Of a stretch of 64,000 nt of DNA, positions 46,713 to 47,719 are shown in pieces; within the stretch, counting starts at the first letter, position 1; each line of letters begins with the position of its first letter. Below the pieces are notes generated by a model. The model was not told where the DNA came from and ran no database searches. It saw nothing but the letters and a program-made list of their open reading frames with translations. The position numbers were made by a program, and so were the translations under genes. This DNA comes from Selaginella moellendorffii (taxonomy: Eukaryota; Plantae; Lycopodiophyta): the NCBI RefSeq assembly GCF_000143415.4, contig NW_003314348.1, forward strand, positions 1-64,000, read 5' to 3'.

Positions 46713-47719
46713 ATGGGTTCGATCGCCATGATCCACAGTGGTAAGCTCTAGATGGTTTTCCTTGCGCTGCTAATTTGCTTTGGTTTTTTTCTTTGCAGGC
46801 TCTTGCATCCACCACAAGCTGGGTATTTTACCGAGAACAACAGCAAAGGGCCTAACAGCTTCATTGAGCATGTCTAGCGCTTTCGAGATTAGCAGGGATC
46901 TTAGAGCTGCTTCTTCTGCAGGTAGGTGGATCGACATACATTCTTCCTCTATGTTATTACATGTTTCCTCTTTCTTCCAAAGTCGGCATACAGGGAATTT
47001 TGTCCAGCGCTTTTTCTCGCCAGCCACCAGTGTGTCTCGCCGTGAGAGCAAGCGCCGAATCCAAATCCAACGCTGAGCTCGTTAAAGACTCGTGGCGAGT
47101 CTTAAAGAGGGACGCTGGAACGCATGCTACCGCTTTCTTTCTCAAGTAAGTTCCTTTTGCTGTTTGTCAAACCAGCTCACGTCTAAGTCCTCTCATCGCA
47201 GGATTTTCGAGATCGCTCCCACTGCCAAGCAGCTCTTTTCGTTCATGAGGGACTCCACCGTCCCGGCGGAAGCTAATCCGCACTTAAAGTCCCACGCACT
47301 CGTCGTCTTTACAATGGTACGCTTGTTCTAGCAGGATTGATATCATCAAACAAGCGTTTTCTCCATTTTCATGACTAGACTTGCGAGGCCGCGATTCTTC
47401 TCGGAGAGGATCCCACACTAGCAGCTTTGAGACCAAAGCTCTTGGAGATGGGACATACGCACGTCGTCCACAAGGTCATCGACGAGCATTTCGACGTAAG
47501 TTTGCTTGTCTTCTCAATTCATTTGGAGCTATTCATTCCTTCAATATTTTTCTTCTCTTTCAGGTGGTAAAATATGCGTTGTTGGAGACTCTAAAAGAAG
47601 CACTCAAGGACGAGTGGAGCCCAAGCATGAAAGCTGCGTGGGCGGAAGCCTACGACGCTGTGACGAAGATTATCAAAGACGAGATGCACGCTGTAAGACG
47701 CATGGAAGTAGCTGTCTAG
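46713..47719 (+). CDS. Phytoglobin (3/3 non-symbiotic hemoglobin) with N-terminal extension
   Basis: LVKDSW; IFEIAP..LFSF; distal His LKSHA; proximal His GHTHV; three plant-globin introns; TATA at ~46643. The 5' exon model is inferred. Confidence 0.9.

Follow-up and report, generated by a model that had tools for sequence, protein, structure and literature searches.

The window analysed here, the first 64,000 nucleotides of contig NW_003314348.1 of Selaginella moellendorffii, harbors a phytoglobin gene of six exons on the plus strand. In the exon-by-exon translation of the window, the gene runs from an ATG at 46713 to a stop codon at 47717-47719; the coding sequence of 702 nt specifies a product of 233 amino acids, and all introns are GT..AG introns of 56-68 nt. 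Coding exon 1 (46713-46740) begins the leader of the protein with codons 1-9 and one base of codon 10, and is followed by leader intron L1 (46741-46798; 58 nt, phase 1, donor GTAAGC, acceptor ...tttgcAG). Exon 2 (46799-46921, codons 10-51) encodes the middle of the leader and contains the tripeptide L-S-M, which corresponds to an L-S-W in relatives. Leader intron L2 (46922-46982; 61 nt, phase 1, donor GTAGGT) ends at 46982 with the acceptor ...ttccaaAG. Exon 3 (46983-47145) is the first globin exon: its first part (46983-47050) completes the leader and closes with V71-R72-A73 (47042-47050), where processing is predicted, and the remainder (47051-47145) opens the predicted mature globin at S74 and covers helices A-B. 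The rest of the gene is divided by the three canonical plant globin introns, located at 47146-47201 (phase 2, B-helix position), 47317-47378 (phase 0), and 47496-47563 (phase 0). They separate exon 4 (47202-47316), which carries the distal histidine H136, exon 5 (47379-47495), which carries Cys145 and the proximal histidine H171, and exon 6 (coding part 47564-47719), which ends in a TAG codon and continues as 3' UTR to ∼47800-47821.

The gene has neighbors on both sides. Upstream, a CIB-type EF-hand gene ends with a TGA at 46495-46497, ∼215 nt before the globin ATG. Directly behind the TGA comes a 54-nt GT..AG intron (46498-46551), whose removal is seen in three of four RNA runs, and the 3' UTR of the CIB gene extends into the promoter and 5' region of the globin gene. 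One contig (X1, 1191 nt) spans from the CIB gene through all globin exons, and could represent read-through or merely overlapping transcripts. The next gene downstream (47866-48540) is small, has several exons, and encodes a Lys/Glu-rich product; RNA contigs cover its start, and the corresponding product of the other haplotype has 131 amino acids and no Pfam match.

Expression of the phytoglobin gene is evident from public RNA data. Fourteen runs from seven studies hold at least half of the sampled words of 46560-47800, which is the share expected for exons alone. Comparison of the RNA-derived contigs of four runs, each from a different study, with 46300-47900 revealed the joints 46740/46799, 46921/46983, 47145/47202, 47316/47379, and 47495/47564 in every run; no other joint within the phytoglobin gene was reported in these contigs. 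This is a real, transcribed S. moellendorffii phytoglobin gene, and the contigs confirm that it is spliced as first read. The original prediction, made from the sequence, had placed the ATG at 46713, exon 2 at 46799-46921, and an acceptor at 46982, and had described two upstream leader exons with phase-1 introns and a frame open into the globin. Sequence, translations, and RNA contigs agree with these assignments, and the junction check that it had called for found in-frame splicing of the leader exons in all four runs.

The start of transcription likely lies near 46677-46682, although contigs are unable to prove a 5' end. The contigs of runs X7 and X9 begin near 46677. In run X5, globin contigs reach a depth of roughly 800-4000 as opposed to 25 for the upstream gene, and the depth climbs from 25 to 878 in the bin 46678-46731. 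A TATA-like box, TATAAAG (46643-46649, plus strand), is found ∼30 nt 5' of the point where the abundant globin contigs begin. One abundant exon-1 contig of run X5 carries, 5' of 46682, 255 nt that are unlike the window; the 30-nt end of this segment matches nothing in the window or in the locus of the other haplotype, and position 46682 is not preceded by AG. The segment may reflect a chimeric contig or an additional 5' segment. At sites 46624, 46654, and 46676, the contigs of X7 and X9 display both alleles, the alternative bases being those of the other haplotype, and hence both haplotypes are transcribed just upstream of the globin ATG.

The choice of start codon is constrained by the distribution of ATGs. 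There is no ATG in 46552-46712, and thus 46713 would be the first AUG even of a longer 5' UTR. Codons 1, 6, and 34 are in-frame ATGs, and the one after these, codon 120, is already within the globin; a sequence check of exon 3 found no in-frame ATG, in keeping with the original statement that the globin exon lacks a suitable ATG near helix A. The older JGI model, a protein of 190 amino acids, instead starts at an ATG at 46961 inside leader intron L2. Its use in the first annotation, together with the contig that joins the CIB gene to the globin, would fit an explanation in which the extra exons come from read-through or untranslated transcripts and the protein starts elsewhere, for example at 46961. 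We consider this very improbable. The segment 46922-46982 is spliced out in all four runs and the ATG at 46961 is lost with it, for which reason the 190-residue model was rejected. Moreover, the leader exons are required for a complete globin because no in-frame ATG falls between codons 34 and 120, and the leader-exon pattern recurs in other plants, with both introns in five of them and with the first only in Cryptomeria.

A second acceptor within exon 3 had been proposed as a splice switch. The CAG in question (46991-46993) is present and is frame-shifting as described: an exon 3 starting at 46994 drops 11 nt and acquires a 27-codon out-of-frame tail that ends at a TGA at 47074-47076. With a frameshift and an early stop, use of this acceptor could only abolish the protein rather than yield a cytosolic form. 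Its use was not seen in the contigs of the four runs, which as contigs drop rare variants. The switch itself was rejected, given a truncated, non-globin product and no contig that uses the CAG.

Identification of the product relied on a search with the last exon alone, which retrieved a 233-residue protein, followed by cluster look-up and retrieval. The translated exons of the window are identical to RefSeq XP_002988171.2, annotated as "hemoglobin-2 isoform X1" of S. moellendorffii; the gene model is therefore already public. The protein of the other haplotype, XP_002963458.2, differs by two substitutions in the leader, H8Q and S41R, and its locus (scaffold GL377568.1) is colinear with 46440-47100 of the window at 99% identity.

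The C-terminal part of the protein has the features of a globin. Pfam Globin (PF00042) matches residues 101-217 with an E-value of 1.8e-21, and there is no Pfam match to residues 1-75. Scanned singly, the exons match weakly (exon 4 at 0.0029, below Pfam's cut-off, and exon 6 at 2.1e-05), and exons 2, 3, and 5 have no match. Solved plant non-symbiotic haemoglobins align from residue 77-81 on, including those of rice (1d8u, 2e-43), Arabidopsis (3zhw, 3e-43), barley (2oif), and sugar beet (7zos). An AlphaFold2 model of the 233-residue protein, built on a 65-sequence alignment, displays a helical globin fold and scores a pLDDT above 90 over most of the globin. The distal (E7) H136 and the proximal (F8) H171 are invariant in alignments of 13 and 65 sequences, as are F103, F107, F117, and F119, and the class-1 cysteine Cys145 is nearly so. 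The same histidines, the cysteine, and the three globin introns are present in the leaderless class-1 forms of rice (Hb1, 1d8u), Arabidopsis (AHb1, 3zhw), and barley (2oif), to which the predicted mature part is 46-50% identical; these forms differ in being ∼160 residues long, with four exons, no leader, and no V-x-A junction. The product therefore appears to be a class-1-type 3/3 phytoglobin. Class-1 phytoglobins bind O2 and convert NO to nitrate; for the Selaginella protein, haem binding, hexacoordination, and NO dioxygenase activity may at most be presumed.

A chloroplast transit peptide is typically rich in Ser and Thr, poor in acidic residues, net positive but uncharged near the N-terminus, and devoid of stable structure, and V-x-A is the classical site of the stromal peptidase. 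The leader of the Selaginella protein had been described as Ser/Ala/Arg-rich, acid-poor, and transit-peptide-like, ∼70 residues long, with a sequence resembling the V-R-A stromal cleavage motif ahead of the globin. Its presence and approximate size stand, with the length corrected to 73 residues, up to V71-R72-A73, and the motif lies where expected. The composition bears out the transit-peptide-like character: residues 1-73 contain 22% S+T, 14% Ala, and only 2.7% D+E, carry a net charge of +5, and have their first charged residue at K16 and their first arginine at R22. The AlphaFold2 model also agrees: except for residue 17, all of residues 1-74 score a pLDDT below 50, and this stretch is modelled without secondary structure. 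V-R-A sits at the exact edge of the globin fold, and removal of the leader there would leave 160 residues, the normal size of a phytoglobin, with a net charge of -3. Plastid import is the best reading of the leader and is somewhat better than an even bet. Against it are an M-G-S start rather than the M-A of a typical transit peptide, the arginine at -2, and a conserved motif of the L-S-W type, discussed below.

A second destination is suggested by the basic, acid-poor composition of the leader and by R72, whose position at -2 relative to the predicted cut suits the matrix processing peptidase. The leader may be a mitochondrial or dual-targeting presequence that takes the phytoglobin to mitochondria, the site of nitrite-derived NO under hypoxia; the phytoglobin-NO cycle is linked to mitochondria, and plant mitochondrial presequences are Ser-rich too. 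The N-terminus speaks against this reading, since it has no arginine in residues 1-21 and the AlphaFold2 model contains no helix there, in place of an Arg-rich amphipathic one. Homologues point the same way: in 67 leaders, described next, the median number of arginines in the first 20 residues is 0, and the leaders are long, with a median of 79 residues. The junction is also informative, as homologues tend to keep V at -3 and A at -1 and have R, K, S, or T at -2. Conservation of V and A without Arg fits a stromal peptidase better than a mitochondrial one, and a mitochondrial or dual address is rated as unlikely.

Leaders of this kind are widespread among land plants. Homologues were collected in two profile searches, one with a profile that contained the leader, which is biased toward leader-bearing forms, and one with the globin part only, which still returned many of them. 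Beside the usual phytoglobins of ∼160 residues, homologues of 206-267 residues were found, and at least 67 distinct, non-redundant phytoglobins carry leaders of 50-100 residues, in liverworts, conifers, Ginkgo, magnoliids, and eudicots. The liverworts are represented by Riccia fluitans, R. sorocarpa, and Calypogeia fissa, the gymnosperms by Ginkgo, Cryptomeria (two genes), and Pinus taeda, and the magnoliids by Cinnamomum and Aristolochia. Eudicot examples include Vitis, Ricinus, Manihot, Hevea, Citrus, Pistacia, Sesamum, Fraxinus, Daucus, Silene, Gypsophila, Rumex, Tarenaya, and others. Every gymnosperm sequence in the sample has a leader. With a median length of 79 residues, the 67 leaders contain 20% S+T and 5.7% D+E.

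The boundary between leader and globin is itself conserved. Just before F-T-E-E-Q, the leader-bearing forms have V in 49/67, R or K in 47/67, and A in 52/67, compared with 9/82 for V and 8/88 for A at the same positions of 88 leaderless forms. The V-(R/K)-A junction is thus largely a feature of the leader-bearing forms. A second conserved element lies within the leader, where [LFIV]-S-[WM] is present in 46/67, and in 34 of those it is located 41-45 residues before helix A. The exact L-S-W occurs in 30/67, and the L-S-M of Selaginella is at -51 from helix A. A motif that land plants have conserved in this way is odd for a plain transit peptide and may have another role.

This motif provides the main argument for a third possibility, that residues 1-73 stay uncleaved and that the phytoglobin resides in the cytosol or nucleus, with these residues as a disordered extension that regulates or anchors it. 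The motif is present in 46 of the 67 leaders, in most of them with a constant spacing to the globin, which exceeds the usual conservation of transit peptides. Leaderless phytoglobins, moreover, are reported to enter chloroplasts and nuclei with no signal at all (PMC12525094). On the other hand, both the composition and the V-x-A junction are as expected for a presequence that is cleaved off, and the junction falls exactly where leaderless phytoglobins begin, such as that of Marchantia paleacea (M-A-V-N-A-F-T). The leader also evolves faster than the globin, and both amino acid differences between the haplotypes are in the leader. Retention of the extension therefore seems quite improbable.

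Leader-bearing genes share an exon structure as well as a junction. The loci of six other leader-bearing genes and one leaderless gene were mapped against their own proteins beside that of Selaginella, with intron positions counted in codons from an anchor in helix A. Both leader introns are present in phase 1 in six of the seven leader-bearing genes: at -74 and -33 in Selaginella, -90 and -19 in Riccia, -79 and -19 in Calypogeia, -74 and -20 in Manihot, -75 and -22 in Silene, and -72 and -20 in Sesamum. Cryptomeria has only the first, at -92 and also in phase 1. The globin introns are located at +21 (phase 2), +60 (phase 0), and +99 (phase 0) in six of the eight genes mapped, with offsets of 1-3 codons in Silene and Calypogeia; the last junction of Manihot was not resolved. 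The window also contains a 13-nt direct repeat (46871-46883 and 47001-47013, 12/13 identical), by which S-S-A-F is encoded twice, in exon 2 and in exon 3. The repeat may be a small internal duplication or may be due to chance; a duplication could explain why the second leader intron of Selaginella is 13 codons farther from the globin than in other plants.

Another lycophyte, Diphasiastrum complanatum (locus L006, 6001-7056), has a leaderless phytoglobin gene of four exons with an in-frame stop just before the ATG, and therefore lycophytes as a group hold both gene types. A survey of the N-termini of lycophyte, fern, and bryophyte globins had been suggested at the outset; the homologues collected here show leaders in liverworts and this mixed state in lycophytes. 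In trees built from the globin part, non-seed and seed plants separate with a support of 100/99, and leader-bearing forms fall on both sides; the trees are poorly resolved within angiosperms, such that the order of leader gains and losses is not readable from them. In Manihot esculenta (locus L002, 1-6813), a leader-bearing gene (243 amino acids) and a leaderless one (162 amino acids) form a tandem pair that directly follows a PDV (plastid division) gene on its downstream side. A Salvia splendens model that fuses PDV_N and Globin domains is probably a merged annotation of the same neighbors.

From the shared structure, junction, and motif, we infer that the leader exons are of common descent. 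The phase-1/phase-1 introns, the junction and L-S-W motifs, and the occurrence of leaders across the deepest split in the tree also lead to a broader reading, in which the six-exon, leader-bearing gene would be the ancestral land-plant 3/3 phytoglobin and the familiar four-exon, "cytosolic" class-1 forms would have arisen by repeated loss of the two leader exons. This reading is tentative, and we place it slightly below even odds.

The usual account treats phytoglobins as NO scavengers of the cytosol or nucleus, and the original prediction took a similar view of 3/3 forms. As a simple statement of location this view is out of date, given the widespread leaders, the report of a chloroplast transit peptide in sugar beet BvHb1.1 (a 2014 paper cited in PMC6668756), and the location of phytoglobins in chloroplasts of Lotus and Arabidopsis (cited in PMC12525094). 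The latter paper calls the chloroplast route of phytoglobins without a transit peptide elusive (PMC12525094). No literature was found on leaders in phytoglobins of lycophytes, Selaginella included, or of bryophytes, and none on the experimental localisation of any leader-bearing phytoglobin.

BvHb1.1 (BvPgb1.1), known here by its description, is the closest parallel: it too is a class-1-type 3/3 globin with an N-terminal leader. In its order, Silene, Gypsophila, and Rumex have the pair of phase-1 leader introns or the V-x-A junction in common with the Selaginella gene. The Selaginella protein differs in belonging to the non-seed-plant globin clade (100/99), in having L-S-M instead of L-S-W, and in the more distant position of its second leader intron; the localisation of the beet protein is its authors' prediction (PMC6668756). 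The liverwort proteins of Riccia fluitans (KAL2652695.1), Riccia sorocarpa, and Calypogeia fissa lie in the same non-seed-plant clade as the Selaginella protein and share the six exons and two phase-1 leader introns. Their Ser/Thr-rich leaders of 90-103 residues are barely alignable with that of Selaginella, and all are unstudied "hypothetical" proteins.

Taken as a whole, the gene is best explained as encoding a class-1-type phytoglobin precursor with a cleavable presequence, most likely a chloroplast transit peptide, a reading to which we assign a probability of roughly 0.62. The transcribed and spliced gene would give rise to a 233-residue precursor, in which residues 1-73, encoded by the two extra 5' exons and the start of exon 3, would act as a cleavable organelle-targeting presequence, most likely for the chloroplast. 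The stromal processing peptidase would cut after V-R-A and leave an ordinary haemoglobin of 160 residues inside the plastid, where it may bind O2 and turn NO into nitrate, as class-1 forms do elsewhere. The gene would then belong to an old leader-bearing lineage common to liverworts, conifers, and many flowering plants.

The leader is neither unique to the Selaginella gene nor new in kind, as the description of the beet protein from 2014 provides a precedent; the main addition is a six-exon architecture conserved across land plants. A lycophyte phytoglobin with a canonical-looking import leader offers a simple, testable route for a haemoglobin into plastids. Leader-bearing genes from liverworts to eudicots share exon structure and junction motifs, and hence provide a defined gene family for testing. 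If the ancestral reading is true, an organelle-targeted haemoglobin would predate the divergence of liverworts, lycophytes, and seed plants.
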